The notes under the pieces are model-generated. The model was not told the origin of the DNA. It searched no databases and saw nothing but the letters and a program-made list of their open reading frames with translations. Shown here piece by piece: positions 34,384-49,515 of a stretch of DNA of 64,000 nucleotides (position 1 is its first letter; the number at the start of each line of letters is the position of its first letter). The translations under genes and the position numbers were made by a program. The stretch lies in sequence record NC_005260.1. One strand, 5' to 3'.

Positions 34384-34505
34384 TGGAGGGGAAGACGGGA
34401 CTCGAACCCGCGACCAACAGTTTGAATTTGCGTTTATTTGCGGTAAAGAATCTTAATCAGATTCCGCTTTGTGCGACTACTGCTCTACCACTGAGCTACT
34501 TCCCC
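34384..34505 (-). ncRNA. tRNA-shaped RNA with ~54-nt insert replacing the anticodon loop (GCAA-module RNA A)
   Basis: GGGGAAG/CTTCCCC-T-CCA acceptor, GCTC-AGTGGTA-GAGC D arm, GCGGG-TTCGAGT-CCCGT T arm; insert contains GAATCT/AGATTC hairpin then TTTACCGCAAAT. Confidence 0.8.
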
Positions 34506-34513
34506 AAATTTTT

Positions 34514-34649
34514 ACAACACTATGCTGGCGGTGCTGGAGTCGAACCAGCGTTACAGGCTTAACAGGCGAGTATTTATTGCAGGAATCATTCTTGACAGAA
34601 TGAATTTTACAGTGTCCTACCACTAGACGAACCGCCAGCATAATGTTGT
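34514..34649 (-). ncRNA. tRNA-shaped RNA with GCAA module in place of the anticodon arm, extended acceptor (RNA B)
   Basis: TGGCGGT/ACCGCCA plus ~12 extra bp, D arm GTCTAGTGGTAGGAC, T arm GCTGG-TTCGACT-CCAGC; TCATTCT/AGAATGA hairpin then TTCCTGCAAT. Confidence 0.8.
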
Positions 34650-34777
34650 TTGTTGTCGCGATACTGGATTCGAACCAGTGACGTTTCTCGATGTGCCCAC
34701 ACGCAACGGAATCGAACCGTTCTCGATACTTCCTCGGCTAGAGGACGTTCTCCCAACTGAACTAATCGCGACAACAA
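34650..34777 (-). ncRNA. tRNA-shaped RNA with two T-arms and a 5-nt anticodon-position loop
   Basis: AACGG-TTCGATT-CCGTT and ACTGG-TTCGAAT-CCAGT inside one TCGCGAT/ATCGCGA acceptor. Confidence 0.75.
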
Positions 34778-34791
34778 AACTATATTAACAC

Positions 34792-35268
34792 TTATTTCTT
34801 AGAAGGTAAACCATTTTCGTTGAACTTTTTCACTGCGAGTTTGAACTTCAAACGAATACACGGCTCACGACTCGGATCCACTTTCATGATCTTGGCATTT
34901 CCACGGTGAATCAGCGAGTAAACATCTTCGATCTGATTCCGAGCAATCAGTTCCGCGAATTCTTCGCTGTATCGAATCTGGGTAGTGAAGTCAATAAACT
35001 CCTCGCCAGAAATCAGATCAACACAACGAGTTACGGCACCATCATACATGTAATCCGTATTCACAACAACACGAACATTACCAGCACCGTCGAAAGAGAT
35101 CATCGGGATGCCGAGAGGACGTTTGTATGAAAGCATGATCAAACGATCTTTCTCTTTACGTTCTTCGTATTCTTTGCGCTTTTGTTCGATTCCAGCCCAT
35201 TTGCCTTCTTCGACGATAGCAGTATAAGTATTCGGGAACAACAGTTTAGCCAGATATTTCATACTCAT
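34792..35268 (-). CDS. hypothetical protein
   Basis: ORF track 158 aa. Confidence 0.7.
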   Translation of the reverse strand: MSMKYLAKLLFPNTYTAIVEEGKWAGIEQKRKEYEERKEKDRLIMLSYKRPLGIPMISFDGAGNVRVVVNTDYMYDGAVTRCVDLISGEEFIDFTTQIRYSEEFAELIARNQIEDVYSLIHRGNAKIMKVDPSREPCIRLKFKLAVKKFNENGLPSKK

Positions 35269-35298
35269 AATAACTTCCTCATTGATTTGATATTCGTA

Positions 35299-35643
35299 TT
35301 ATAGCGACTCTGGATTACCAGTCAAGCAAAAATATGCGATTGCGATCAAAATTTTACACACAACATGAAGTGCCTGATCTTGATGTAATCCAATCTTACC
35401 GTTGCACTTAGCATAATCGATGATCCAATGACTTACAAGCTCTGCCAAACTAAGCCAAACGCTCTTGGTTGCAACGTATACCACAAGCGCATGGGTAGCA
35501 CTATGGGCAGTTAGCCAGTAAATCCAATGCACTCCATAGAGTGGAGAGTTGATAGGATTCTTACCACGAGCAATACTATCGGATTGCAGAACATAATCGG
35601 CCACAAAATGACCGATAATCAGAACATATAGAATCTCAAACAT
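35299..35643 (-). CDS. DUF3307-family membrane protein
   Basis: GHFVADYVLQ, H..H, SHWIID..K, DQALH. Confidence 0.8.
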   Translation of the reverse strand: MFEILYVLIIGHFVADYVLQSDSIARGKNPINSPLYGVHWIYWLTAHSATHALVVYVATKSVWLSLAELVSHWIIDYAKCNGKIGLHQDQALHVVCKILIAIAYFCLTGNPESL

Positions 35644-35914
35644 TTCGCGGCGCCATCACTAAGAAAACGTGATATCCGTTTTGTTTGATTTGTCTGGTAT
35701 GAAAGCTGAATCCGCGAGACAACAGAATAACATGATCGTGCTGGCTAATGAAATCGCTTCTGTCCATTGGATCGGTACTAACTTCGTCGTATCCGATACA
35801 CTCGATAGTCCGAAGAATCCGAGATAGATTTTCAGATACCATCGTGTTCGATCTTCTCTTGCAACTCTGCTTTGCAGTTTGCCAAATGATGTTCGATAAC
35901 ACGTTCATCGGCAA
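35636..35914 (-). CDS. hypothetical protein
   Basis: True start probably MVSENL. Confidence 0.5.
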   Translation of the reverse strand: MPMNVLSNIIWQTAKQSCKRRSNTMVSENLSRILRTIECIGYDEVSTDPMDRSDFISQHDHVILLSRGFSFHTRQIKQNGYHVFLVMAPRNV

Positions 35915-36119
35915 ACAATTTCAGATTCAGGCTGGTGCGATAGTGATCGCCTTCGCCAGCGTGAGAGTGAAACCAGAACTCCACATTACCTTCATCGTCG
36001 ATGTTGGCATCATTGGATTCCCAGTTAGAATCTCCATTGACTTTGATTTCGTTCGCATGTGCGACTATCGCTTGCTTGAAAGTCTTGATGTTATAAATTA
36101 GCGCATTTGTATTTCGCAT
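35832..36119 (-). CDS. hypothetical protein
   Basis: ORF track 95 aa. Confidence 0.65.
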   Translation of the reverse strand: MRNTNALIYNIKTFKQAIVAHANEIKVNGDSNWESNDANIDDEGNVEFWFHSHAGEGDHYRTSLNLKLFADERVIEHHLANCKAELQEKIEHDGI

Positions 36120-36461
36120 TTATTCTCCGTTAACTTGTTTCAAAAAATCTTCCACCTGCTTGATCCAAGACGAAACGCTTGCTTGATCGCGGAAGAAATC
36201 CATTTCAAATTTGTGTTCAAGCTCTTTGCCGTCGGCATCGAACTTCACAATGATTTCTTTCTTGTTCAGATTGAACGATACATCATCGGCCTTAAAATCC
36301 ATTTTGTGGATTTTTGCCATTGCATCGCCGTACATCTTCACGTTGGCAAGTATAAACTCAATAATAGAACTCATGATAATCTCACATTGGAGTTGGAATT
36401 TGGCCGAATTCAGCTTGCAGTCGCTTGTAATGTTCCAAGCGTTGTTGCTTCTGATTAGCAA
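36120..36461 (-). CDS. hypothetical protein
   Basis: True start probably MSSIIE. Confidence 0.6.
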   Translation of the reverse strand: MLIRSNNAWNITSDCKLNSAKFQLQCEIIMSSIIEFILANVKMYGDAMAKIHKMDFKADDVSFNLNKKEIIVKFDADGKELEHKFEMDFFRDQASVSSWIKQVEDFLKQVNGE

Positions 36462-36795
36462 TCCATGCTTCTTTCTTGACCCGGTACTCTTCGTCTTTCT
36501 GCTTTATGTGAGCAAAAGATCGCGCAATCTCGGATTCGATATCTTCCAGGATGTCGTCGATCTCTCGATCATCAACCGCGACGTCAATGCTACAAACATG
36601 GAAGTCGTCATCCCAGCCAGTCTCAAAAGTGACGCTAATCGTCATGTCTTCGAGATCCATGCTAACATTCGAATATCGACCAGTCAACTTGCGAATGTTA
36701 TCTTTATCGTGAAACTGGGAAACTTTTTCGTTCCATTCAGCTCGCAACGTCTCGACTTTCGCCACAATCTTCTTACAATCTTCACTTTTGAACAT
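36382..36795 (-). CDS. hypothetical protein, paralog of 36797..37183
   Basis: MF..EDCKK...W and C-terminal charged helix. Confidence 0.7.
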   Translation of the reverse strand: MFKSEDCKKIVAKVETLRAEWNEKVSQFHDKDNIRKLTGRYSNVSMDLEDMTISVTFETGWDDDFHVCSIDVAVDDREIDDILEDIESEIARSFAHIKQKDEEYRVKKEAWIANQKQQRLEHYKRLQAEFGQIPTPM

Positions 36796-36796
36796 G

Positions 36797-37183
36797 TTAT
36801 TCTCCGAATTTCTCTTTAAGTTTCAGATAGGTTTCGCGTTCTTCTTGCTCTCGTTTGGCAATTTGATCCAGTCTATCTTGCTCTTTTTTCTTGCGTTCGT
36901 CAAGCTTCGATTTCAATCTGTCGCCGAACTTGGAATTCAGATCATTGATGATAGTATCGATGTCTTTTGTTCCGATGTTGGTTTCCACACAGAATACCGC
37001 ACCATCTTCCCACCACATATGATCGAATGCTACATGAATATCCAGATATGAGAATCTGATATCGATTGTTGCCGTTCTTACTTTGAGATGAGTGTCTATC
37101 GTGGCAATCTCTTGATTCCATTTCAGTTGAGCAGCAAATGCCCATTGCTTCAATTTATCACAATCATTTTTGTTTATGAACAT
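36797..37183 (-). CDS. hypothetical protein, paralog of 36382..36795
   Basis: MF..NDCDK...W and C-terminal charged helix. Confidence 0.7.
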   Translation of the reverse strand: MFINKNDCDKLKQWAFAAQLKWNQEIATIDTHLKVRTATIDIRFSYLDIHVAFDHMWWEDGAVFCVETNIGTKDIDTIINDLNSKFGDRLKSKLDERKKKEQDRLDQIAKREQEERETYLKLKEKFGE

Positions 37184-37260
37184 GTTTGTTCTCCTTTTGT
37201 ATATTCTCTCATATCCAACGCATATGTCAATAAAAAAGGCACCCGAAGGTGCCTTAATTT

Positions 37261-38697
37261 TTAGAAGTCGATACCGACGTAACGGTCGCTCATGATCTTG
37301 TCAAGCATGATTTGCATCGGGTTAAAGTCTTTCGCACTCAGGATTGTCTCCATGATTGCGGGACTGAAACCGGACACCAACGCAGTGCCTTGATCATCTT
37401 TGGTCACCGGATTGTTAGTCGGGCGCGGGCAAAGATTCCAGAATACCAGCTTCGGCATTTCGTAACCAGCATCGCGGTAAGTCTGACGAATCACCTCAAA
37501 GTTGGTACGTTCGCGATCACGCATACGATAGTATCCGCTGTAACCGCCGTCAGCGATGTTGAATTCCATGTCAGACAAGACGACCATCATAGTCGGCATA
37601 TCTTCTTGCGGAACTCGATTGCGTACAGCGCGATCAAGAATGATCTTGAATGCACCGGCAAAGTTGGTAGAGCCACCCCAAGGAGCGCGTCCCAGATGAT
37701 TCACCATGCTTTGCAGATCGTCGCCTTTCGCTTTGATGTTGTAGAACTGAGGATTATCATCGAAGGTAATCACTTCGTTCTTGAACACGCCACCAGAGCG
37801 TTCGCCGATATACAGACCCAGAGAAATCGCGATGTCCATAGCAGACAGACCAGCAACAGCAGTCGGAGTGCTCATAGAACCGGAAACGTCAACCATTGCG
37901 ATTACGTTTTCGGTAGAGCCAGCCATCCAGTCGCGTTGTGCTTTCCATTGCGCGTCAGCAGCAATAGAAGAACCGGTACGCATGGACTTGATCATGTCAT
38001 ACGGGTAAACTGCACCAGCGTTGATCTTAGCCTCGCCCTTTTTCAGAGACTCAAGGTAAGCAACATAACGCTCGTTCGCGTTTTTCAGGAATGCTTTCTG
38101 ATATCGAGCAGAAGCAACAGACGGCAGTTTACCGAACTCAATGCCATCCCACTGACGAGCACACATCTTTTGTTCAACGGTGTTCGACATACGGACGATA
38201 GTGTGACGGTATTCTTTGGCAGTCATCTGCATGGCTTTCGCTAGAATGCCAGCTTCTGAGCCTTTGCGCGGTGCCCACTTTGCAGCAAGACCGTTTTGCT
38301 TGGTCATGATTGCATCAACCATGATCGCAACAGCGGCGTCCTGAATCGGAGAGTTGAACATCGCTACCACATCTTTGAAGCGACCGATTTCAGGAGTGTT
38401 CATCAGAACAACGGTAGCATCAACCGGGTGACGGTGTGCAAGGACTTTCAGCAGGCGGATGAATTGTTCGCGTTCACCGGCACCACCGCGAATATCGCGA
38501 GCCCATTGCAGAATGCGAACAGCCCAGTCCGGAGACTCGGTATAAGCATCAACAAACATCTGAGTTAGATCTTTCCCGCGAGAGGAACCAATCTGAGAAA
38601 ACAGATTCAGACACTTGTCGCCAGTAGTGTAGTTAGTAACAGCACCGTTAGCAGTGCGGGCTTGAGCTTGTACCATTGCATTCATAAAAGTAGACAC
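37261..38697 (-). CDS. DUF2828-family TROVE/Ro60-like protein with vWA (MIDAS) domain
   Basis: TANGA, ARDIRGGAGER, AKWAPR, DVSGSMS, TFDDNP, WGGSTNF, LSDMEFN, FWNL; probable GTG start at 38697 with AGAGGT RBS. Confidence 0.85.
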   Translation of the reverse strand: MSTFMNAMVQAQARTANGAVTNYTTGDKCLNLFSQIGSSRGKDLTQMFVDAYTESPDWAVRILQWARDIRGGAGEREQFIRLLKVLAHRHPVDATVVLMNTPEIGRFKDVVAMFNSPIQDAAVAIMVDAIMTKQNGLAAKWAPRKGSEAGILAKAMQMTAKEYRHTIVRMSNTVEQKMCARQWDGIEFGKLPSVASARYQKAFLKNANERYVAYLESLKKGEAKINAGAVYPYDMIKSMRTGSSIAADAQWKAQRDWMAGSTENVIAMVDVSGSMSTPTAVAGLSAMDIAISLGLYIGERSGGVFKNEVITFDDNPQFYNIKAKGDDLQSMVNHLGRAPWGGSTNFAGAFKIILDRAVRNRVPQEDMPTMMVVLSDMEFNIADGGYSGYYRMRDRERTNFEVIRQTYRDAGYEMPKLVFWNLCPRPTNNPVTKDDQGTALVSGFSPAIMETILSAKDFNPMQIMLDKIMSDRYVGIDF

Positions 38698-38710
38698 AGA
38701 ATTACCTCTT

Positions 38711-39310
38711 TCAGGTTTGTTTGAATTTGTCCCAATCATAGGACAGTTTGTTTTTCCAGCACTTGCGGCAGAACGAGATATAACGTTGTTCAGCCCCAAT
38801 GCAAATTTGTTCACCGCGACGGATAACATTGCCGTTATCATCAACGCGAGCTACCATACAGGATTTTCTACCACAATCGCAGATACCAGACAGTTGTCGG
38901 ATTTCATCTGAGATCGAAAGCAATGCCCTAGAGCCGGGGAACAAGTTACCGAGAAAATCGGTACGCAGTCCGTAGCACATCACAGGGATATCCAGCTTGT
39001 CAACTACATCAGATAGTTCCCATACTTGTTTTTCAGTTAGGAACTGCGCTTCATCAACAAGAACACAGGCGATTTCGGACAGTTTACTCTCTTTTTCGAT
39101 CATTGTAAACATGTTTTCATTAACATGTACACATCGGCATTCACGCTGGATACCGATACGTGATCCAATCGTGCCTTCCGTTCTCGTGTCAAATGCTGGT
39201 TTGTACAACAGAACGTTTTGATTTCTCTCGTTGTAGTTGAAAGCCACTTGCAGTAATTGAGTGCTCTTTCCAACGTTCATCGAGGCATGGGTGAAAAATA
39301 ACTTAGCCAT
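38711..39310 (-). CDS. tk: thymidine kinase
   Basis: SMNVGKST, VLVDEAQFL, YGLRTDF, CDCGRK, YISFCRKC. Confidence 0.95.
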   Translation of the reverse strand: MAKLFFTHASMNVGKSTQLLQVAFNYNERNQNVLLYKPAFDTRTEGTIGSRIGIQRECRCVHVNENMFTMIEKESKLSEIACVLVDEAQFLTEKQVWELSDVVDKLDIPVMCYGLRTDFLGNLFPGSRALLSISDEIRQLSGICDCGRKSCMVARVDDNGNVIRRGEQICIGAEQRYISFCRKCWKNKLSYDWDKFKQT

Positions 39311-39359
39311 TGATTCCTCTTTTCTGTTACTTTAACTCGCCTTCCATGGCAAGTAAACA

Positions 39360-39686
39360 TCAGTAACAATATTTCGCTAAAAAGTTAGCTTGGTATGAAT
39401 CGTCCTTGATGTAGTATTTGATTCCACTTTGATACACAGCTTTCAATAGTACAACGGTTTCTTGTTTGAACTCGGGTACAATCGTACAGCTACCAGTTTC
39501 GATTGTGTGAACAAGAATTCCGTTATATTCAAACTCAACGCGAGCAGCTTGATAGAACTTACCTCTCCACTCTTGTGGCTTGTATCGCGTCGCCTGTGCT
39601 GTTACTTCACGAACAACAATTGGCTTTTCTGGTTCGCCGCAACCAGATAACAGCGCGACGAACACAAGAAACATTACACGGAACAT
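39360..39686 (-). CDS. predicted lipoprotein
   Basis: Lipobox LLSGC. Confidence 0.7.
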   Translation of the reverse strand: MFRVMFLVFVALLSGCGEPEKPIVVREVTAQATRYKPQEWRGKFYQAARVEFEYNGILVHTIETGSCTIVPEFKQETVVLLKAVYQSGIKYYIKDDSYQANFLAKYCY

Positions 39687-39695
39687 ATAATTCCC

Positions 39696-40124
39696 TTACA
39701 GAACAGGCACCACGGTGATAGCGGAACTAGCATTGTCGCCGTCCATTTTCTTGGTATAGCTCACATAAACCATGTTCATATGCTCTTTGTCATACACACG
39801 GTCGATCACCATGTTTTTGAAAAACCAGCTTTTCTTCTGAGAGAAAATGTTTTTGCGAGACGTCAGCTCAACGCCAGAAGCAAACGGAGCAGAAACACAC
39901 TGCATTGCCACGTCGGTCTGATCTTCGAAACTCAGAGTTCGAGACGGCAGATTCACATAGCAGGTGATGTTCGGATAGTCTGGATCACTGAATACTTCCA
40001 CACTCAGGGTATCTTTGAATACCAGGCCGGAAGTCTCAACTTCGTACAGGGTATCGGCTTTAACAGCACCAACAGCCAGCATGGCACACACGAACATCAG
40101 GTTTTGAATAATCTTTTTCATCAT
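39696..40124 (-). CDS. creA: CreA-family exported protein
   Basis: VEVFSDPDYPNITCY, IFSQKKSWFFK, RVYDK, VYVSYT. Confidence 0.85.
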   Translation of the reverse strand: MMKKIIQNLMFVCAMLAVGAVKADTLYEVETSGLVFKDTLSVEVFSDPDYPNITCYVNLPSRTLSFEDQTDVAMQCVSAPFASGVELTSRKNIFSQKKSWFFKNMVIDRVYDKEHMNMVYVSYTKKMDGDNASSAITVVPVL

Positions 40125-40399
40125 ATTTCCTTAGCAATTACTTTGCAGTTGACAACATAACACGATTTGCCGTTATACTTAAATGTAACAAAATCGCGGG
40201 TAATACTCAAATCGGTGACTATCAAGTTCCTCGCGAGGATTTTCTCTCCGCTTTCGCTTGGCAGTTGATAGTATGTCTCATAAGCTTTATCTATGTAATA
40301 GATCGATACAACATGTTGGGCCATTATTTCAGATCCCAGATAACGGAACAAGTGGCATTTGTGACGTAGTATTGACGCTCGTTGAGCATAAACATCCAA
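40121..40399 (-). CDS. hypothetical protein
   Basis: True start probably MAQHVV. Confidence 0.5.
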   Translation of the reverse strand: MDVYAQRASILRHKCHLFRYLGSEIMAQHVVSIYYIDKAYETYYQLPSESGEKILARNLIVTDLSITRDFVTFKYNGKSCYVVNCKVIAKEI

Positions 40400-40566
40400 C
40401 CATCACCAATTCGACTCAACTCACCGGCACGAATGCCGTTAATCAGCATACCGTCTGGAGTCTTCACATATCCGCCGTTTTGAAACCAGCAAGTAATCAT
40501 GCCAGGTACCGCGAACACAGAGCTATTAAACAACATCAGAGCCACAAACGCAAGAACTTTTTTCAT
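40324..40566 (-). CDS. small exported protein
   Basis: Signal peptide; paralog of 40570..40791. Confidence 0.7.
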   Translation of the reverse strand: MKKVLAFVALMLFNSSVFAVPGMITCWFQNGGYVKTPDGMLINGIRAGELSRIGDGWMFMLNERQYYVTNATCSVIWDLK

Positions 40567-40569
40567 TTT

Positions 40570-40791
40570 TCACCTTTCAAGTAAGCAAATAACGCCATTT
40601 AGTTTATACGACTTCTTATCATACCAGAATGACGTTTCCATTCCGTCAATTATTGCAAGTCGAACGTATAGATTTTTAATCTCCGCATCGCCGATCTTAA
40701 CATAGTTCCCGTTTTGAAACTGACAAGTTAGAATCTCTGCATTAGCGGTACTCGCAAACATCAGAGCGACAAAAGCAATAACTTTTTTCAT
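40570..40791 (-). CDS. small exported protein
   Basis: Signal peptide; TCxFQNGxYVK shared with neighbour. Confidence 0.7.
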   Translation of the reverse strand: MKKVIAFVALMFASTANAEILTCQFQNGNYVKIGDAEIKNLYVRLAIIDGMETSFWYDKKSYKLNGVICLLER

Positions 40792-40988: not shown

Positions 40989-41004
40989 ATGCAGTTCTGA
41001 GCTA

Positions 41005-42701: not shown

Positions 42702-42717
42702 ACGATCTCCAAATATA

Positions 42718-42800: not shown

Positions 42801-42806
42801 TAATAT

Positions 42807-43178: not shown

Positions 43179-43371
43179 AAGCGATCAACATCTTTTTATC
43201 TTCTACGGCGTTAAACGGCGACTGAGCAACAAAGACAACTTTATTTTGTTGGTGCATTTCATTGATGTACCGACACACTCGATCACCGTTGTCAAACATA
43301 CGAGATAGGTAGAGTCGTTGAAACTGAGACAATCGGACTTTCTTGTCCTTGTCAACGTCTATATAATGCAT
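43060..43371 (-). CDS. hypothetical protein
   Basis: ORF track 103 aa. Confidence 0.6.
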   Translation of the reverse strand: MHYIDVDKDKKVRLSQFQRLYLSRMFDNGDRVCRYINEMHQQNKVVFVAQSPFNAVEDKKMLIACASEFAFHRELSRQKDDFNFQMHKALHEANWEYEHDSDD

Positions 43372-43586
43372 TAATTCGGACCGCCTTCGAGTTCACCGAA
43401 AGTTTCTTCGGTATGCTCTTGGACAGAGAAGTGATAGCTTTCGCTGTATCCTTTCTCGGAATACTCGGCGTTAGCGCGAGCAGCAACAGATTCAGCGATC
43501 TTTTTGTCAGTGCGAACGGCATAGAACTCTTTGTATTCTCCACCGTACTCTACATCAAAGAATGAACGAATGACAACATAAAACAT
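43371..43586 (-). CDS. hypothetical protein
   Basis: Start MFYVVI after GAGGAAATAATC; upstream ORF extension overlaps a tRNA. Confidence 0.65.
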   Translation of the reverse strand: MFYVVIRSFFDVEYGGEYKEFYAVRTDKKIAESVAARANAEYSEKGYSESYHFSVQEHTEETFGELEGGPN

Positions 43587-43607
43587 GATTATTTCCTCAG
43601 ATGAATT

Positions 43608-43682
43608 TGGTGGCCCCGGTGGGAATCGAACCCACATCAAGCGGTTATGAGCCGCACGCTAAAACCCTCCAGCTACGGGGCC
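43608..43682 (-). tRNA. tRNA-Ile2(CAT) (or Met)
   Basis: GGCCCCG acceptor, CT-CAT-AA loop, A-CCA; resembles T4/E. coli Ile2. Confidence 0.85.
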
Positions 43683-43722
43683 ATGTTTATAGGAACCATT
43701 ATTACATAGTTCCTAATGATAG

Positions 43723-44109
43723 TCAACCTTTAAGATTCAGTTTGTATCGAATCGAAGTCAAAAACGTCATGATATCTTCCAGTGCATTCACCAGATCGAA
43801 ATGGCGTTTAGTCTCCAAATACTCATGCACCATAGTACACTCTTGTAGGAAATTGTCAATCAACATTTCAACTTCCACTTCCGCGTGAGTGGCTGTAAAA
43901 CTCTGAACATAGCCACGAGCGATAGCGCATTCAGCAAAGCTATCAATCAGCTCTGGAAGTCCTTCGTAGTACGCTTGGAGTGCTGTATGGCGGCTATAGA
44001 TGGTAGTAGTCAGGTGTTGATGATGAACGTATGCCACGCTTTTCAGAAGCTTGGAAATTAGTTCACCAACACTTGAGTTCGCATCACCTTTGAAATCTTT
44101 GAAACTCAT
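43723..44109 (-). CDS. ferritin-like helical protein, T4 e.6-like
   Basis: VHHQH...YSRHTALQAYYEGLPELIDSFAE; CTAAATA at 44149-44155. Confidence 0.65.
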   Translation of the reverse strand: MSFKDFKGDANSSVGELISKLLKSVAYVHHQHLTTTIYSRHTALQAYYEGLPELIDSFAECAIARGYVQSFTATHAEVEVEMLIDNFLQECTMVHEYLETKRHFDLVNALEDIMTFLTSIRYKLNLKG

Positions 44110-44156
44110 ATTATACTCCTAATGAAAAAGGGAGCCGAAGCTCCCTTTTATTTAGA

Positions 44157-44243
44157 TGGTACGGATGGTCGGACTCGAACCGACACGCTATCACTAGCGC
44201 GAGCACCTAAAACTCGTGTGTCTACCAATTTCACCACATCCGC
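44157..44243 (-). tRNA. tRNA-Leu(TAG)
   Basis: Cloverleaf with long variable arm, CCA. Confidence 0.9.
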
Positions 44244-44249
44244 ATTGTT

Positions 44250-44337
44250 TGGAGGAGAAAGTGGGATTCGAACCCACGGACCCTTGCGGGCCTACGAATT
44301 AGCAATCCGCTACGTTCGGCCTCTCTGTCATTTCTCC
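44250..44337 (-). tRNA. tRNA-Ser(GCT)
   Basis: GGAGAAA/TTTCTCC, TT-GCT-AA, CCA. Confidence 0.9.
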
Positions 44338-44447
44338 ATGTTCTTTGATGTAATCAGCGGCTCGTTTAATCTGTTCCCACTGAGAATCAGTTACTTTACT
44401 ACCGGATAACTCGAACGAGGCTCTTACGTTTTCCTCGATCTCTTGTT

Positions 44448-44669
44448 TTAAGCTTTGCAATAGTCGGTACCACTTCGAACAAAACCACCATGATCTTTCT
44501 GTCCAATGCAGTGGACACCGCGACATACTTTAATCAGTCCAAGCTTTAGCAGTCTAGTAATCTGATCATTAGAACATCTTGCCTTGGATTGAGTTGTACC
44601 AAATCCATTAGAATTAGCGGTATCAGCGAAACGAGATTGCAGTTCAATATCAGCTTTGGTGATTTTCAT
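44448..44669 (-). CDS. hypothetical protein
   Basis: ORF track 73 aa. Confidence 0.5.
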   Translation of the reverse strand: MKITKADIELQSRFADTANSNGFGTTQSKARCSNDQITRLLKLGLIKVCRGVHCIGQKDHGGFVRSGTDYCKA

Positions 44670-44693
44670 AATATAACTCTCTATTGTTTAATT

Positions 44694-44788
44694 TGGCGGA
44701 AGCGATCCGATTCGAACGGATGGACGAGGGGATACCTCGCCGCAAGTTTTCAAGACTTGTGCAATAAGCCGGACTCTGCCACGCTTCC
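44694..44788 (-). tRNA. tRNA-Ser(TGA)
   Basis: GGAAGCG/CGCTTCC, CT-TGA-AA, G-CCA. Confidence 0.9.
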
Positions 44789-44874
44789 AAATTCTTCGAC
44801 ACGGCTCTATGTCGTCATGACTCTTGAACATTACGTTCTGGCTACATACGCGCATCACCTTCCCATTTGATAAT

Positions 44875-45219
44875 TTAACGAGCTACGGGAATCATAGCAG
44901 CTCGTTCCAACCGATCTGCACATTGATTTCTAATATCGACAATAACAGAACGAGCAGACTCAGTGGAAATACCAAGAATGGTATTCAATTCCGTTATATT
45001 GACTCCAATCAATGGGTCTTTATATTTTATATTATCGAATCGTTTGATTAGATGGTTTATGCGTTTCAGTTCTTCTGGACGAGCATGTAAAGAATCGCGA
45101 TACAAGCCGTCAACTATTTCCATAAACTCACGCTCGTTGAAATTCAACGTAGCGACCAGTTCACAGTTAGACCCATACTCAGATTTATCAATAGGTTTTA
45201 CAATCATTTCTCGGCTCAT
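44875..45219 (-). CDS. hypothetical protein
   Basis: Start MSREMIV at 45219; ORF-track extension runs through tRNA-Gln. Confidence 0.6.
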   Translation of the reverse strand: MSREMIVKPIDKSEYGSNCELVATLNFNEREFMEIVDGLYRDSLHARPEELKRINHLIKRFDNIKYKDPLIGVNITELNTILGISTESARSVIVDIRNQCADRLERAAMIPVAR

Positions 45220-45233
45220 TTTATTTTTGAAAT

Positions 45234-45310
45234 TGGCGGGGGATGTTGAATTCGAATCAACGATATCGGAGTCAAAGTCCGATGCCTTAGGCCAGCTAGG
45301 CGAATCCCCT
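45234..45310 (-). tRNA. tRNA-Gln(TTG)
   Basis: TCGGA-CTTTGAC-TCCGA, G-CCA, A1:C72 mismatch. Confidence 0.9.
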
Positions 45311-45563
45311 ATAATTCTTAGCAGACATGAACGTTTAACGTGAGTCGCTGCCTTATCGTTTCGGTAACTTAATCCTACTTTGTGTAACCTCACATCATTC
45401 AACGCAACGCTGAATCAATTCAAAGAACTCTAATCAAGAACTCTTTGAAGTGACTCACAAGTAAATCACTCGCCCCTTAAAATCGCATGTTCTTTCGAAC
45501 AGAGGGAATTTTTCAGCTGGACTTCTAACAAAGTTTCCTAGGACATTGTTAGCATTCTCTATT

Positions 45564-45638
45564 TGGTCTCGGGTGAGTGAATCGAACACTCGACGACCTG
45601 GTCCCAAACCAGGCGACATACCACTTGCCTAACCCGAG
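45564..45638 (-). tRNA. tRNA-Pro(TGG)
   Basis: CCTGG-TTTGGGA-CCAGG, CCA. Confidence 0.9.
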
Positions 45639-45647
45639 GTAACTAGA

Positions 45648-45749
45648 CGCTAAGGTAGAGAATCGAACTCTACATGAAATCAATACCGACGGGGCAATAT
45701 ATATCCCGACTTTCGAGAAGCTATCTCATTGCACTTAAAAGCATTAGCG
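45648..45749 (-). ncRNA. tRNA-shaped RNA with branched domain replacing the anticodon arm
   Basis: CGCTAA/TTAGCG + GTAGAG-TTCGATT-CTCTAC; internal ATGAGAT/ATTTCAT stem; no CCA. Confidence 0.6.
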
Positions 45750-45774
45750 ATTTCACCTTTCAAAGCGATTAAAC

Positions 45775-45850
45775 TGGTGGGCCCTCCCAGAATTGAACTG
45801 GGGACACTATGATCTTCAATCATATGCTCTACCTACTGAGCTAAGGACCC
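45775..45850 (-). tRNA. tRNA-Phe(GAA)
   Basis: TATGA-TTGAAGA-TCATA, CCA. Confidence 0.9.
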
Positions 45851-45855
45851 GAGAT

Positions 45856-45931
45856 TGGGGTGACGGACGGGGATCGAACCCGTGACTACCAAGATCACAG
45901 CCTGGAGCTCTACCAACTGAACTACCGTCAC
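45856..45931 (-). tRNA. tRNA-His(GTG)
   Basis: CCAGG-CTGTGAT-CTTGG, C73-CCA; -1 position is T. Confidence 0.9.
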
Positions 45932-46010
45932 ATAAATGATCACTCGAAAGAAAGCATTTATGTAACGAGTTACACACTGACATATATGGGAACATCAGAA
46001 CCCTTTTCAC

Positions 46011-46085
46011 TGGAGCCCCCACTCGGGATTGAACCGAGGACCTACTGCTTACAAGGCAGTTGCTCTACCACTGAGCTATAGAGGC
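46011..46085 (-). tRNA. tRNA-Thr(TGT)
   Basis: ACTGC-CTTGTAA-GCAGT, CCA. Confidence 0.9.
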
Positions 46086-46091
46086 GAAATT

Positions 46092-46183
46092 TGGTGGATG
46101 CGGTAGGAGTCGAACCTACAATGTTTACCCTGTGGGGCCAGATTTACAGTCTGGTGCAATACCACCGTCATTGCAGCACATCC
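46092..46183 (-). tRNA. tRNA-Tyr(GTA)
   Basis: CCAGA-CTGTAAA-TCTGG, long variable arm, CCA. Confidence 0.9.
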
Positions 46184-46208
46184 ATTATTCTTTATTTAGT
46201 ACGCTATG

Positions 46209-46282
46209 ATGCGAGTGGTGGATTTGAACCACCGACCTTTAGCTTATGAGGCTAACGAGATACCGGACTTCTCCAACTCGCA
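46209..46282 (-). tRNA. tRNA-Met(CAT), initiator-like D arm, no encoded CCA
   Basis: TTAGC-CTCATAA-GCTAA; acceptor extended by a GCGCTATGA/TCATAGCGT stem. Confidence 0.8.
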
Positions 46283-46302
46283 TCATAGCGCACTAATCAA
46301 TT

Positions 46303-46378
46303 TGGTTCTCCGTATGGAATTCGAATCCATGTTACCGCCGTGAAAGGGCAGTGTCCTAGTCCACTAGACGAACGGAGA
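46303..46378 (-). tRNA. tRNA-Glu(TTC)
   Basis: CTGCC-CTTTCAC-GGCGG, CCA. Confidence 0.9.
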
Positions 46379-46382
46379 TCTG

Positions 46383-46622
46383 TCAATAAGCGAAACTAAA
46401 CAATCGTCTTTGTTTTGCTTTTAAGTCTTCTTCGACAACAGAGACATTATCACATGTTTCCGCAGTAGAGTAAACATCTTTTTGTTTTTCTTTTTCAGCG
46501 GCTTCCGCAGCTTTCTTTCTAGCAAGTGGACCAACGTTTTTCCACAACGGAGCGTCGTACCATGCTTTGCTACACTGATTACCCGAGCCACGATTGGCGC
46601 GAGCGTCTTGATCATTACTCAT
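46383..46622 (-). CDS. hypothetical late protein
   Basis: Start MSNDQD with AAGGAG RBS; CTAAATA at 46646-46652. Confidence 0.6.
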   Translation of the reverse strand: MSNDQDARANRGSGNQCSKAWYDAPLWKNVGPLARKKAAEAAEKEKQKDVYSTAETCDNVSVVEEDLKAKQRRLFSFAY

Positions 46623-46656
46623 ATAAACTCCTTTAATAGCAAGTCTATTTAGTACC

Positions 46657-46791
46657 AAATTTAAATGCACTGTCTAGATCCCCGCAGGTGGTTCCCACTC
46701 TACTAGCCTTTGTTTGCACAAGCTTGCGGCTCTTAGCTACATACGAGGGCTTATCTCGTCCAATGATGGTAAGGGCAATGCACTTAAATTT
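46657..46791 (-). ncRNA. structured RNA resembling a reduced tmRNA mRNA-like domain
   Basis: 13-bp closing stem, ACGAG/CTCGT hairpin with pseudoknot potential, GCA AAC AAA GGC TAG TAG mini-ORF. Confidence 0.45.
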
Positions 46792-46864
46792 GGTGGAGAC
46801 GACGGGATTTCCGCCCGTATCTCAGGTCCCAGTGACCTGCGATTATGAAGTTATCTACGTCCCC
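46791..46864 (-). ncRNA. tmRNA-like tRNA-like domain (alanine-type acceptor)
   Basis: GGGGACG/CGTCTCC-A-CCA with G3-U70, stemless D region, CAGGTC/GACCTG helix, atypical T loop CGGAAAT. Confidence 0.65.
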
Positions 46865-46869
46865 GAATC

Positions 46870-46944
46870 TGGTGGTGCATGGTAGATTCGAACTACCGAC
46901 CGACGGCGTATGAAACCGCAGCTCTACCACTGAGCTAATGCACC
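46870..46944 (-). tRNA. tRNA-Met(CAT), elongator
   Basis: GGTGCAT/ATGCACC, TT-CAT-AC, CCA. Confidence 0.85.
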
Positions 46945-47163
46945 AGACGGTATCCAGAATAACAGATACCGAGGCAATAATCAACCATTCGGTTGCAAAG
47001 AGATTTAACCAACAACAAACTACTCTCATTGTATGTCGTGTTGGAAGCACTTCTCAGATCGTCCGTGGTAAACATCACGCGCCCCGTCTGAGCCTAATCT
47101 ATTGCTTTTTTATAGCCTATCGCCACGCAACAAGTATATGGCCTATTGCTTGACTCGACTATT

Positions 47164-47240
47164 TGGTACGCCGCCCGGGACTCGAACCCGGAACCTATCG
47201 GTTAAAAGCCGATTGCTCTAAACCATTGAGCTAACAGCGC
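47164..47240 (-). tRNA. tRNA-Lys(TTT)
   Basis: ATCGG-CTTTTAA-CCGAT, CCA. Confidence 0.9.
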
Positions 47241-47246
47241 ATTGTT

Positions 47247-47320
47247 TGGCAGGGGATGTAAGAATCGAACTCACGTCAACGGATTTGGAATCCGCCGCAT
47301 AACCATTTTGCTAATCCCCT
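47247..47320 (-). tRNA. tRNA-Trp(CCA)
   Basis: GCGGA-TTCCAAA-TCCGT, G-CCA. Confidence 0.9.
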
Positions 47321-47326
47321 ATATTC

Positions 47327-47506
47327 TTACCAGCTATCAAAATCCGTAATGGGAACACTCTTTGCTCCATCTTTGACAGCTTTTGCACTAACCACAGTAC
47401 CGATTGATCCGCTTTCGTATTCAACATCAATCAGATTCGTTTCGTGCATCTGCATGAGTTCCATCATACGCTGAATCTCAAGCATTGTAAACCTTACTTT
47501 ATTCAT
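47327..47506 (-). CDS. hypothetical protein (59 aa, below ORF-track cutoff)
   Basis: Manual translation MNKVRFTMLEIQRMMELMQMH...DFDSW. Confidence 0.5.
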   Translation of the reverse strand: MNKVRFTMLEIQRMMELMQMHETNLIDVEYESGSIGTVVSAKAVKDGAKSVPITDFDSW

Positions 47507-47513
47507 TTTTCAC

Positions 47514-47723
47514 CTACAGAATAGGACTTTCGATTGTGACGTCAAGAACGGAATAATACGTGCTGTATTCCGAACCCATGTCGTCGTAATGTGCGCGAAC
47601 TTTACTTTCGGCATCGTCTATGTCTTCCGCTTCTACCAATTTAATGGTATCGAATGACTTGGATGATCCCATGTATTCGCTTTTCATATAACGTATCTTA
47701 GCAAGAAACAACATCGTTGTCAA
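47514..47723 (-). CDS. hypothetical protein
   Basis: ORF track 69 aa. Confidence 0.6.
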   Translation of the reverse strand: MTTMLFLAKIRYMKSEYMGSSKSFDTIKLVEAEDIDDAESKVRAHYDDMGSEYSTYYSVLDVTIESPIL

Positions 47724-48120
47724 CCTTTAACGTATAGATTTTCGAAGTGTGTCCAGTCATAGGCTGAACTCCGCAAATTTCCTCAGCAATCAGCTTGGGA
47801 ACAAATCTAGGAACAACTGTGAGTCTATCGAAAATCGCTTGATTTCCTTTATCCCAGTTCTGTTGTCTTTTGATCGCCGCAATCTGTGTTGACTTGATAT
47901 CAAGTTCTTCCGCTTTCAGAAGCTCGAATTCTAAGTCATTGCTATAGGTAACACCATACGCGATTACGATATCAAAGTCAATAGGACATTCAGGCGTTTC
48001 GGTATATCTAATGATCTGTCTCAGTGTTCGAACATCATCTTGAAACCAACCGCAGTTGATAAAGCATTGTCCGACACGTTCGCCGTTCTTCATGAACAGC
48101 GCCCAACTAGGTGCGCTCAT
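47698..48120 (-). CDS. hypothetical protein
   Basis: ORF track 140 aa. Confidence 0.65.
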   Translation of the reverse strand: MSAPSWALFMKNGERVGQCFINCGWFQDDVRTLRQIIRYTETPECPIDFDIVIAYGVTYSNDLEFELLKAEELDIKSTQIAAIKRQQNWDKGNQAIFDRLTVVPRFVPKLIAEEICGVQPMTGHTSKIYTLKVDNDVVSC

Positions 48121-48264
48121 ACTTTATTTCTCAATAGAGTGAATCACAGATAATAGTGAGGACAAGAAGTACATCCGTTAGGATGGCATGTTGCCGTTCT
48201 ATCATCACAAATAAAAACAACAGGAATTAATACCATATTAGCTTTCATTTTTATTCCTTGTTAT

Positions 48265-48339
48265 TGGAGTACCGGATCTGATTTGAACAGACGTAAAAGT
48301 GATTTGCAATCACTTGCCTTACCGCTTGGCTACCGGCAC
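48265..48339 (-). tRNA. tRNA-Cys(GCA)
   Basis: AGTGA-TTGCAAA-TCACT, U73-CCA. Confidence 0.9.
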
Positions 48340-48346
48340 GTTAATC

Positions 48347-48420
48347 TGGAGCCTCATTCGGGAATCGAACCCGACACTACGACTTGGAAGGACGGTATGT
48401 GACCACTACACCAATGAGGC
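48347..48420 (-). tRNA. tRNA-Gly(TCC)
   Basis: CT-TCC-AA loop, U73-CCA; anticodon stem has two mismatches (C27:T43, T30:T40). Confidence 0.8.
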
Positions 48421-48493
48421 ATTTCTGAGTAGTCGAGCCGACTTATCCGTATTCTTTCAACGGTGAGCTGATAGCTACTCTAAACTTTAAATT

Positions 48494-48569
48494 TGGTGGA
48501 GAAAATGGGACTCGAACCCACGACCCCCAGCTTGCAAGGCTAGTGCTCTCCCATCTGAGCTATTTCCCC
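48494..48569 (-). tRNA. tRNA-Ala(TGC)
   Basis: G3-U70, CT-TGC-AA, CCA. Confidence 0.92.
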
Positions 48570-48638
48570 AAATTCTAATAGATACTCGCAAGTATACATT
48601 AGAATAGGCACTTTATGCAAGTACCTACGCAAGTCTTC

Positions 48639-48781
48639 GGATTCACATACGGGAGCGGTGACTAACCCGCGTTACTTTTATATGCTGTTCCCTCTCAGCC
48701 GCACATCCAACTACCGAAGCAAAGGAGTGCTATCCATTAATAGTAGAGTTTTGTTTTTGTATTGATTGCAGAAGTGAATCC
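48639..48781 (-). ncRNA. GCAA-module RNA C (long internal domain)
   Basis: GGATTCAC/GTGAATCC terminal stem followed by TTCTGCAATCAAT. Confidence 0.6.
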
Positions 48782-48844
48782 ATGCAATTTCAAAGAGCAA
48801 TTGAACTACTGTCGGGTAAGTTCATTTTCCTGCTAGGCAGAAAC

Positions 48845-48931
48845 TGGTGGAGAAGACTAGCTTCGATTCTAGTAAGGCTTGTAAAGCGGGCCCATCACGA
48901 GGACCTGAGACTCTTTATCTCTTACTTCTCC
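48845..48931 (-). ncRNA. atypical class-II-shaped tRNA-like RNA (GTG triplet, C33, aberrant T loop)
   Basis: GGAGAAG/CTTCTCC-A-CCA, GAGA/TCTC, GGTCC-TCGTGAT-GGGCC, GCTT/AAGC variable arm, ACTAG-AATCGAAG-CTAGT. Confidence 0.65.
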
Positions 48932-48938
48932 ATAAAAC

Positions 48939-49013
48939 TGGCGGTGCATACGGGAATCGAACCCGTATCTTGTGATAGACAGTCACGAATAATAGCCATT
49001 ATACTAATGCACC
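48939..49013 (-). tRNA. tRNA-Asp(GTC)
   Basis: GTGA-CTGTCTA-TCAC, G-CCA. Confidence 0.9.
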
Positions 49014-49019
49014 TAAATT

Positions 49020-49094
49020 TGGTAGTCCCGAATGGTATCGAACCATCCACATCCGCGTTATCAGCACGGCGCTCTACCTCTGAGCTACGGGACT
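49020..49094 (-). tRNA. tRNA-Ile(GAT)
   Basis: CCGTG-CTGATAA-CGCGG, CCA. Confidence 0.9.
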
Positions 49095-49101
49095 AAAGAC
49101 T

Positions 49102-49207
49102 GAAAGACTTTTTAACTGCCACCTGGACTCTTGTGCTAGAGAGTTGAGGAATCGAACCTCACCGTTTTCTTAAAATAGAAAAGTTATATTGATTGCTGAA
49201 ATCTTTC
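49102..49207 (-). ncRNA. GCAA-module RNA D with circularly permuted tRNA-like domain (YrlA topology)
   Basis: GAAAGATT/AGTCTTTC stem, CAGCAAT, T arm TGAGG-TTCGATT-CCTCA, stacked closed stem ACTCT/AGAGT, AGGTGGCA D-like loop. Confidence 0.75.
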
Positions 49208-49229
49208 TTAGCACGGTAAATCATTATTG

Positions 49230-49311
49230 CGGAGGAGGTTGGACTCGAACCAACATAGGGTTATTACCCGCAGATTAACAGTCTGCCGCTCAACCTTTGA
49301 GCCACACCTCC
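49230..49311 (-). tRNA. tRNA-Asn(GTT) with long variable arm, no encoded CCA
   Basis: GCAGA-CTGTTAA-TCTGC, GGGT-AATA-ACCC variable arm, 10-bp acceptor extension. Confidence 0.8.
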
Positions 49312-49337
49312 GCAATAATGACTTGCAAATAAGAAAC

Positions 49338-49399
49338 GGAATGAACTTTTAAGGCTATTTCAAATAATGGCTTTTTAAGTTAGTTGCTGAACTCATTCC
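49338..49399 (-). ncRNA. standalone GCAA-module RNA E
   Basis: GGAATGAGTT-CAGCAAC...TTAAA-AGTTCATTCC; own promoter GTTTACA(49434-49440)-17-TATAGT(49411-49416). Confidence 0.75.
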
Positions 49400-49461
49400 T
49401 ATCTTTGTTTACTATACACTACTATTTAGTGACTGTAAACAAAGCATCTTAAATTTTTGAC

Positions 49462-49515
49462 AGGCTCACTTTTTGATTTCATCCGCAGAAAAGTTTTGAT
49501 TGCTGAACGGAGCCT
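49462..49515 (-). ncRNA. standalone GCAA-module RNA F
   Basis: AGGCTC-CGTT-CAGCAAT...AAAAAGT-GAGCCT; own promoter GTTTACA(49546-49552)-17-TACAAT(49523-49528). Confidence 0.75.

Follow-up and report, generated by a model that had tools for sequence, protein, structure and literature searches.

Aeromonas phage Aeh1, a T4-type myovirus (Straboviridae, Cinqassovirus), probably encodes a ribonucleoprotein (RNP) system paralogous to Ro60, in which six RNA loci, here named A to F, would be the Y-RNA-like partners of the DUF2828/DUF7788 protein Aeh1p164. All of them lie in a window of 64,000 nt of record NC_005260.1, i.e., the whole stretch of DNA that was analysed, where a window coordinate (used throughout) is the record coordinate minus 62000. 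The six RNAs carry a common module with a CAGCAA-type hexamer, and its helices covary; the protein is predicted to fold like Ro60; and module and gene are found together across phages. Direct binding of the RNAs by the protein, their existence as discrete transcripts, and a biological role for the complex are what we infer from these observations.

A module shared by six RNA loci of Aeh1

The minus strand holds every annotated gene of the 16-kb stretch under study, together with all 23 tRNAs found by ARAGORN, and loci A–F are, therefore, read as reverse complements. GenBank labels locus A as a 122-nt “tRNA-Val (CAC)” and leaves loci B–F unannotated; the DUF2828 gene is an “RNA-binding protein” in RefSeq. 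At the gathering threshold, Rfam finds only tRNAs in the whole window; at permissive E-values, in the four regions searched, no family reaches its threshold or explains the loci.

On the RNA strand, the module consists of a 7-bp stem with an invariant G-C pair, a spacer of 2–4 nt of U/A, the hexamer CAGCAA, an A-run standing before the opposite stem strand, and an NGU tail; CNGCAA replaces CAGCAA in loci A, B, and C. In C, D, E, and F, the first helix strand is followed by UU, CAGCAA (CUGCAA in C), and then YYAA, and the 3′ end of the RNA complements its own first 6–9 bases; AAAA(A)G precedes the 3′ strand in D, E, and F and is absent in C. The exact 12-mer TTCWGCAAYYAA is present at 48762–48773, 49189–49200, 49380–49391, and 49496–49507, all on the minus strand and within 750 nt, against about 0.06 exact matches expected in 128 kb by composition-blind arithmetic. 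When up to one mismatch is allowed, five copies are found versus 4.13 expected in shuffles, which is not significant; the significance thus rests on the four exact, clustered, same-strand copies. A loose definition of the module (“helix + CNGCAA”) was dropped as unspecific, since it gave dozens of chance matches in the window; specificity comes only with the fuller module, i.e., a G at stem position 2, the 2–4-nt spacer, CAGCAA, and the A-run.

The loci fall into three topologies (Table 1). E and F are short and open. Covariance model R1, built from 18 modules trimmed to helix, motif, and A-run (trimming was used because MAFFT misaligned the 3′ strands of the full-length short RNAs), gives E as its top match in the window, with 31.3 bits and an E-value of 1.5e-5, which is rough since R1 was calibrated quickly; it matches F over its full length with 25.6 bits. 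The F promoter, whose −10 element ends 7 nt before the first base of F, is conserved in relatives, and the E promoter ends 12 nt before E and is invariant in a seven-phage alignment. The three sigma-70-like sites of the region do not exceed the number in shuffles, and the argument for them is one of position and conservation. The third, at 49591–49619 (−; TTTACA-17-TATCAT, TG extended), lies upstream of the F promoter, so that three promoters are stacked within 210 nt at the head of the tRNA operon. No terminators were found downstream of E or F; these would, therefore, be the heads of transcripts running on into the tRNAs.

C and D are open as well, with larger contents: a 110-nt conserved internal domain in C, whose hexamer is CAGCAA in phage phiAS5, and a tRNA-like domain in D. 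In A and B, the order of the insert is A-run, hairpin, UUN, and CNGCAA, i.e., that of a circularly permuted module. Locus A reaches 53 bits with the Rfam tRNA model, and its 53-nt insert exactly replaces the anticodon loop. It has neither the 7-nt anticodon loop nor the conserved anticodon of a tRNA, the annotated CAC becoming CAA or GAA-type in relatives; locus A is thus not a decoding tRNA with an intron. Locus B is missed by both ARAGORN and Rfam (tRNA threshold of 29 bits). Its hairpin strands, UCAUUCU/AGAAUGA, match those of E and of the unrelated metagenomic loci L058 and L073. As expected from a permutation, the closed hairpins retain the end sequences of the open form (AUUCU-GUCA-AGAAU versus 5′-AGAAU...AUUCU-GU-3′). 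The 9-bp acceptor helix of B, GCUGGCGGU/ACCGCCAGC, on a 5-bp T stem would make 14 bp, versus 12 in a tRNA and 13 in selenocysteine tRNA (tRNA-Sec), and B has no encoded CCA, unlike A.

Reading the loci on the RNA strand, thus, bears out what the initial annotation of the window had proposed: a helix with CNGCAA shared by six loci, an A-run in all of them except C, promoters of their own just upstream of E and F, a permuted tRNA-like domain in D (its T arm and closed hairpin are clear, its D arm degenerate), a circularly permuted module at the anticodon site of A and B, and a B hairpin close to the strands of E.

Table 1. Module loci, promoters, and the DUF2828/DUF7788 gene in the Aeh1 window.
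Feature	Coordinates	Strand	Description
Locus F	49462–49515	−	54-nt short open module RNA; AGGCUC/GAGCCU stem; CAGCAA 49500–49505; UGCGGAU box 49481–49487; CUGU tail
Locus E	49338–49399	−	62-nt short open module RNA; GGAAUGA/UCAUUCC stem; CAGCAA 49384–49389
Promoter of F	49523–49551	−	Sigma-70-like, TTTACA-17-TACAAT, TG extended; 10/12 consensus matches
Promoter of E	49411–49439	−	Sigma-70-like, TTTACA-17-TATAGT; 10/12 consensus matches
Locus D	49102–49207	−	106-nt open module, YrlA-type topology; T arm 49145–49161, then closed acceptor-like hairpin and degenerate D arm (from fold and T-arm search)
Locus C	48639–48781	−	143-nt open module; stem GGAUUCAC/GUGAAUCC; CUGCAA 48766–48771
Locus A	34384–34505	−	tRNA-like RNA with encoded CCA; closed permuted module 34432–34473; CCGCAA 34438–34443
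Locus B	34523–34639 (improved bounds)	−	tRNA-like RNA with 9-bp acceptor helix, D and T arms; closed permuted module in anticodon arm, 34571–34610; CUGCAA 34577–34582
DUF2828/DUF7788 gene Aeh1p164	37261–38697	−	478 aa, GTG start; ring + vWA/MIDAS (metal ion-dependent adhesion site) predicted

All six loci are found at syntenic sites in the relatives Ah1, avDM12-TAAL, PX29, AsFcp_1, phiAS5, and phiWae14. In this seven-phage comparison, motif and A-run are invariant, and the helices change by compensation: the F stem AGGCUC/GAGCCU becomes AGGCUG/CAGCCU in phiAS5 and phiWae14; the E stem GGAAUGA/UCAUUCC becomes AGAGUGA/UCACUCU in PX29 and AsFcp_1, a double compensatory change; and the D stem exists as four helices (GAAAGA, GGAAGA, GGAACA, and GGAUCA), each with its matching 3′ strand. 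The A hairpin passes from AAUCU/AGAUU to AUUCU/AGAAU, the motif of this locus being CCGCAA, CAGCAA, or CGGCAA in relatives, and the T stem of B covaries. Locus C is 89–94% identical, and unannotated, in 13 Aeromonas phage records, with an inner hairpin changing from GCGG/CCGC to GUGG/CCAC; BLASTN with this locus returned nothing beyond close Aeromonas relatives. Over 43 distinct independent loci, the stem is paired in 97% of cells (65% in shuffles and 28–45% when the partner strand is slid), 6 of the 7 stem pairs have changed on both sides, and G2–C36 is nearly invariant; these pairing statistics are partly built in, the seed alignment A3 having been chosen for the best-pairing 3′ strand and alignment A4 fitted to the R1 model, a bias of which the strand and distance statistics given below are free. 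Conservation and covariation, on which the initial annotation had made its proposal depend, are present.

Association of the module with DUF2828 genes

We ran R1 on 1.3 Mb around 80 unrelated IMG/VR DUF2828 genes, whose proteins are 41–48% identical to that of Aeh1. At E ≤ 1 (again, a rough E-value), there are 46 matches, 45 of them on the strand of the DUF2828 gene, and 39 of the 80 loci have at least one; the single match on the opposite strand sets the background at about 1 per 1.3 Mb per strand. More than half of the matches (28/46) lie within 500 nt of the DUF2828 gene, typically 20–330 nt after its stop or 12–25 nt before its start, and in many cases the distance to start or stop is 12–30 nt. 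With filters off, R1 produced truncated, poorer alignments and no new members. A structure-aware pattern scan of the same loci gave 117 matches on the gene strand versus 14 on the opposite strand and 12 in shuffles, with 61/80 loci positive; the lengths found are bimodal (about 52–64 nt and about 95–135 nt), and 19 of the RNAs contain a T-loop. A distribution of the motif independent of DUF2828, which by the initial annotation would have refuted its reading, was thus not found around these genes.

Modules were also found with DUF2828 in distant named phages, a simple scanner giving Faith1, wV8, and PG216; there are now nine such phages, from five bacterial phyla. In Mycobacterium phage Faith1, three tandem modules (50, 122, and 62 nt) occupy the 370-nt gap between the DUF2828 stop and a terminator, the middle one (6533–6654) enclosing a T arm, a closed hairpin, and a clear D arm. 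In the Felix-O1-like phage wV8, the DUF2828 gene (gene 47) comes directly before a tRNA cluster that contains three modules, one of which (8392–8517) has a T arm, a hairpin, and a D arm; in Vibrio phage PG216, the tRNA cluster that contains the modules precedes the DUF2828 gene by 7 kb. Listeria phage P100 has three modules immediately before the gene, under a promoter of their own; Enterococcus phage A2 has three by the gene, and in unit 2 the T arm, hairpin, and D arm are of textbook form; Staphylococcus phage S-CoN_Ph2 has three on its 3′ side; Campylobacter phage CP81 has two on its 5′ side; Bacillus phage PJN02 has one adjoining it; and Sinorhizobium phage phiM7 has a minimal hairpin 17 nt upstream of the DUF2828 start codon.

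Each of the three topologies seen by the initial annotation in Aeh1 recurs in unrelated phages. F-type short RNAs with a GCGGA box are found in Faith1 and wV8, and the D type recurs in Faith1, wV8, and A2. The A/B type recurs at L090 367–493, a tRNA-like RNA with an encoded CCA whose anticodon arm reads AAAAAAA-UUAUUCU-GACA-AGAAUAA-GUU-CUGCAA; it belongs to the clustered tRNA genes of an unrelated phage, the DUF2828 protein of which is 41% identical to that of Aeh1.

Several further observations concern these loci. The DUF2828 gene is immediately beside a tRNA cluster in wV8, PG216, P100, CP81, PJN02, and L090. A second box, U(U)GCGGA(U/A), stands in the interval between motif and A-run in Aeh1 F, Faith1 (L009 6497–6503), and wV8 (L010 7940–7946); its sharing across phages suggests sub-families with distinct cargo. 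Minimal modules of 32–35 nt, made of the helix and a CAGCAA loop, are placed 12–17 nt before the DUF2828 start at L016 1764–1795, L013 9642–9674, L014 2859–2890, L076 1741–1774, and L177 7950–7984; such modules may be translational operators, with autoregulation as an added role. Phage T4 has no DUF2828 gene and no module in its tRNA region, rnaC, or rnaD; its sole R1 match at E < 0.1 by the rough calibration (L178 14507–14540, minus strand, 19.3 bits) falls within the vs.8 coding region and is probably due to chance.

A Ro60-like protein and its putative RNA partners

Pfam recognizes DUF7788 (3.6e-51) and DUF2828 (3.8e-31) in Aeh1p164, with vWA models matching weakly, and PHROG 850, “RNA-binding protein”, matches it at 4e-166; proteins encoded next to the gene gave uninformative Pfam matches. 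RefSeq starts the coding sequence at 38841 (extension 38698–38841, minus strand), overlapping tk by 131 nt; we favour the shorter gene starting at the GTG at 38697, the start also given by the initial annotation, because homologs are about 470–480 aa long and a GAGG Shine-Dalgarno sequence lies 7 nt upstream of this codon. An AlphaFold2 model of the protein, made with 30 homologs in the alignment, has a predicted local distance difference test (pLDDT) score of 83.8. When this model is compared with the PDB by Foldseek, the top 11 matches, each over the full length, are all Ro60 proteins (Thermus phage phiLo, Xenopus, and human), with E-values of 2.4e-7 to 5e-5 and template modelling (TM) scores of 0.46–0.62, isolated vWA domains ranking next; the DxSxS MIDAS residues D270, S272, and S274 are invariant. 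The model, thus, supports the description of Aeh1p164 as a HEAT-repeat ring with a vWA/MIDAS domain, Ro60-like by fold, in agreement with the label that the initial annotation had put on it.

The family is found in 710 of 50,697 phage records, among them phages of Listeria, Staphylococcus, Enterococcus, Bacillus, Campylobacter, Vibrio, Sinorhizobium, and Mycobacterium as well as Felixounavirus, and clustering at 50% identity gives about 10,000 clusters, which span phages, giant viruses, and eukaryotes; members are also known in several eukaryotic lineages (plants, Klebsormidium, an oomycete, tardigrades, and Bigelowiella) and in giant viruses of amoebae, mimiviruses among them. Some homologs from tardigrades and Cotonvirus bear the UniRef name “TROVE domain-containing”, and the proteins of Mycobacterium phages are annotated “Ro-like”; one of these, gp53 of LeBron (cluster L1, like Faith1), is mildly toxic to M. 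smegmatis on overproduction.

Known Ro60 genes have Y RNAs at most 4 kb away on the same strand, and YrlA mimics a tRNA (Chen et al. 2014, PMC4201824, a survey based on TROVE-annotated genomes with ET08 as the phage example). The likeness to the bacterial Ro60 (Rsr)–YrlA/YrlB system (RF02553) is extensive: a ring-plus-vWA protein, nearby RNAs encoded in the same orientation, frequently as tandem pairs or triplets, and a terminal stem that brings the two RNA ends together and has a short conserved motif beside its 5′ strand. The YrlA arrangement of a T arm, a closed acceptor hairpin, and a D arm within the terminal stem is that of Faith1 6533–6654, wV8 8392–8517, and A2 unit 2; in D, the T arm and the hairpin are there and the D arm is degenerate. 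There are differences as well: the Aeh1 protein belongs to Pfam DUF2828/DUF7788 and not to TROVE; the YrlA motif is GNCGAAN0-1G, whereas here (U/A)(U/A)N-CAGCAA follows the stem, with an A-run in addition; and the closed form in a true tRNA body, as in A and B, is not described for YrlA. Indeed, the Rfam YrlA model (threshold of 69 bits) gives no match to D at E ≤ 10, its best score among the relatives being 21.7 bits in Faith1, which agrees with the distinction from YrlA made by the initial annotation. A partial YrlA match of 17.5 bits was dropped as an artefact spanning the T arm of B and the D arm of A.

Two phage systems are also close. Ro60 of Thermus phage phiLo binds two phage Y-like RNAs and host polynucleotide phosphorylase (PNPase) (PMC12135203); like the Aeh1 system, phiLo Ro60–Yrl1/Yrl2 (PDB 9L5Y, 9KOP) combines a phage protein of Ro60 fold with Y-like RNAs beside its gene, and the fold of the Aeh1 model is matched best by this protein. 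It differs in being a canonical TROVE protein, with about 15% sequence identity to that of Aeh1, and in having RNAs with a CGAA motif. In Bas63 (Felixounavirus), the Ro60-like protein gp130, whose gene immediately precedes the tRNA cluster, counters the Ppl defence; the PhageMaP preprint that reported this also guessed that some Bas63 “tRNAs” are Y RNAs (bioRxiv 10.1101/2024.10.10.617714). Its position is that of wV8 gene 47, and genus and gene position are the grounds on which we take it for a homolog of the Aeh1 protein. We found no paper describing CAGCAA-module RNAs; our proposal is, nonetheless, not entirely new, the Ro60-like gp130 and the Y-RNA guess of 2024 being the nearest prior statement. 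The preprint identified no RNA partner, whereas a partner family and its motif are defined here. T4 rnaC and rnaD (species 1 and 2) resemble the module RNAs in being small stable RNAs co-transcribed with a tRNA cluster, rnaC ending in a T-arm-like hairpin; we rejected them as homologs, for they have no CAGCAA module; they also have no such terminal stem, and T4 is without DUF2828.

The shared module is most likely a protein-binding handle, made of the 7-bp helix with its invariant G-C pair near the end, the single-stranded (U/A)(U/A)N-CAGCAA, the A-run opposite, and the NGU tail; it would occupy the position that the terminal stem and CGAA motif have in Y/YrlA RNAs. The variable part would be cargo: almost none in E and F, the 110-nt domain in C, a tRNA-shaped domain (T arm, closed acceptor, and D arm) in D, and a whole tRNA body in A and B, with its acceptor end free and a loop-closed handle in place of the anticodon loop. 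D and A/B would then fold alike, with a tRNA elbow stacked on the handle, the position of the chain ends being their sole difference. We favour this handle-and-cargo reading because a protein of Ro60 fold, two or three neighbouring RNAs on the same strand, a terminal helix with its motif, and one tRNA mimic together make up the pattern known from Ro60 with its Y/YrlA RNAs and from phiLo Ro60 with Yrl1/Yrl2, though in another protein family and with another motif. The RNAs would be expressed together with the phage tRNAs, F and E from their own early-type promoters and the others cut from tRNA operon transcripts. In the Ro60 family, Y RNA is bound on the outside of the ring and misfolded RNA in its cavity. 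If the Aeh1 system works like Ro60 with Y RNA, the handle may load the protein, and the cargo may gate the ring or tether tRNA-handling or RNA-decay enzymes, for the purpose of RNA quality control or counter-defence during infection.

Several points weigh against this reading, besides the bias of the pairing statistics noted above. The Pfam TROVE model does not match Aeh1p164, and phmmer against the PDB is insignificant, TROVE chains appearing only at E 0.77 and through the vWA part. Locus C, without an A-run and matched by R1 in its 5′ part only (12.6 bits), is the weakest and an atypical member. In Aeh1 itself, the DUF2828 gene is 2.6 kb from A/B and 10–11 kb from C–F. In 883 kb around the giant-virus/eukaryote-like branch of DUF2828, there are 8 weak matches, 4 per strand, with no convincing enrichment. 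Finally, Bas63 gp130 alone, from a plasmid or in T7, rescued plating on Ppl hosts; its anti-Ppl activity, therefore, needs no phage RNAs or uses host RNAs.

This last result also speaks for another partner altogether: the module could be read by an RRM, Hfq, or ProQ-type protein, or by a target RNA pairing with the CAGCAA loop, DUF2828 being linked to it functionally or by co-inheritance. gp130 is active in T7 without phage RNAs, and for the look-alike Class I RNA of Dictyostelium, discussed below, direct binding has been shown for the RRM protein Rnp1A only (PMC7919456). We consider this unlikely: in phages of Actinobacteria, Firmicutes, Proteobacteria, and Campylobacterota, the module lies close to, and on the same strand as, members of a single gene family, and such tight linkage is what marks a protein and an RNA that pair directly, as in the case of Ro60 and Y RNA (PMC4201824); no second gene was noticed travelling with the module.

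It is very improbable, in our judgement, that the modules are processing or stability signals of tRNA operons (for RNase E, RNase III, RNase P, or the entry or stop of an exonuclease) with no direct tie to DUF2828. They are, it is true, interspersed among tRNAs in Aeh1, L090, wV8, and PG216, often a few bases after the CCA of a tRNA, and the E and F transcripts read on into tRNAs with no terminator between. However, in Faith1, S-CoN_Ph2, and many IMG/VR loci, the modules flank DUF2828 with no tRNA annotated close by; the T4 tRNA operon has no modules; and a mere processing site would need neither an invariant single-stranded hexamer nor a folded tRNA-like cargo. Least probable of all is that the module is chiefly a cis-acting operator on the DUF2828 mRNA, of which the copies among tRNAs are secondary: nine loci (L016, L013, L014, L076, L081, L082, L085, and L089 among them, and also phiM7) do have a minimal module of 32–56 nt ending 12–25 nt before the DUF2828 start, but most copies are downstream or kilobases off, with promoters of their own, in tandem twos and threes, and with elaborate cargo domains, and an operator would also demand binding of the module by the protein, so that it overlaps the handle-and-cargo reading rather than replacing it.

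Two other unusual tRNA-like RNAs of the window, both without the CAGCAA motif, should be mentioned. The first, at 34648–34772 (−), is the third odd RNA of its kind, immediately upstream of locus B; it has an acceptor stem, a D arm, a short anticodon-like hairpin, and then two T arms, AACGGUUCGAUUCCGUU and ACUGGUUCGAAUCCAGU, with a conserved GUGUGGGCAC stretch between them. It is kept in all six relatives, where it is partly annotated as tRNA-OTHER or tRNA-Ala. The second, at 52904–53008 (−), is 105 nt long and scores 49.8 bits with the Rfam tRNA model; its anticodon arm is lengthened into a hairpin of about 20 bp capped by UAAC. It is a tRNA-Glu in the Aeh1 annotation and a “tRNA-Lys with intron” in PX29, and its conservation is partial.

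Resemblance to Dictyostelium Class I RNAs, and what the module RNAs may mean

Class I RNAs are abundant, developmentally regulated RNAs of about 60 nt, known since 2004 and reported to be unique to dictyostelids. Their Rfam family, RF01414, is the best or only non-tRNA match to the modules in three permissive scans, with 23.1 and 19.1 bits in P100, 18.9 and 14.3 in Faith1, and 15.5 for Aeh1 F, all below its threshold of 41.5; each alignment extends over the full length and coincides exactly with a module. One has to note that Kjellin et al. (2021) set their own lower bound at 15 bits, plus a promoter criterion (PMC7919456). As described by these authors, Class I RNAs are 42–65 nt long, with a short stem joining the ends, in which a conserved 5′ G pairs with the C of a 3′ CUGU; an 11-nt motif, CCUUACAGCAA, near-invariant at positions U3, C6, C9, A10, and A11, directly follows the 5′ strand and is followed by a variable region and an A-rich tract before the 3′ strand (PMC7919456).

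The phage RNAs have, likewise, a 6–7-bp stem with a terminal G-C, (C)CUUACAGCAA after the 5′ strand, an A-rich tract, and a CUG(U) tail. E (62 nt) and F (54 nt) have the Class I structure, with G2–C36 invariant and C6 to A11 identical; U3-U4-A5 is matched in wV8, P100, and many IMG/VR loci, and many phage RNAs read UUACAGCAA exactly. The short phage form has a median of 53 nt, most being 52–64 nt long, and the tail has G at +2 in 59% of loci, though the scan did not require a G there. The differences are an extra CCUUC between A-run and stem in the Dictyostelium RNAs, the fact that the only proven binder of Class I RNA is an RRM protein, and the setting: Class I RNAs belong to dictyostelid genomes, with a Dictyostelium upstream sequence element (DUSE) promoter about 60 nt upstream, whereas the phage RNAs have sigma-70-type promoters. 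Avesson et al. (2011) reportedly list four Class I-binding proteins.

Two long Class I RNAs, DdR-66 and DdR-67, have an internal GGUGUAGAAUAGGUGGGAG...GUGAAAUACCACC domain (PMC7919456, supplement). No dictyostelid DUF2828 protein was among the matches listed when a length-shifted query and a tardigrade query were run, when a eukaryotic profile was run against 1.8 billion representatives, and when asparagine-rich candidates and the Kjellin supplement were gone through. The CAGCAA-module RNAs of phages and the Class I RNAs of Dictyostelium may form one RNA family, a tentative thought that we would not go so far as to call probable. The internal domain of DdR-66 and DdR-67 is, we presume, similar to a conserved segment of large-subunit rRNA; if it is indeed rRNA-like, it would be a parallel to the phage RNAs that carry tRNA mimics.

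If the two are one family, RNAs of the Class I type would be to the DUF2828 branch of Ro60-like proteins what Y RNAs are to Ro60, in phages and giant viruses as well as in plants, oomycetes, tardigrades, and other eukaryotes, and the phage RNAs would show the purpose of the variable part, namely the carrying of tRNA or other structured-RNA mimics. A eukaryotic RNA class that has been an orphan for about twenty years would then gain a testable protein partner, provided that the resemblance is real.

The DUF2828 family is very common, and in phage genomes its annotation says only “RNA-binding protein” or “Ro-like”. With candidate partner RNAs and an exact motif, a structural guess can be turned into direct experiments on binding, mutation, and structure, and annotators could stop naming the module RNAs tRNAs with introns or tRNA-OTHER. 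The proposed pairing helps explain the place of the DUF2828 gene beside phage tRNA clusters. Lastly, a single genome would join a tRNA body and a protein handle either way round, which bears on the origin of Y RNAs from tRNAs.

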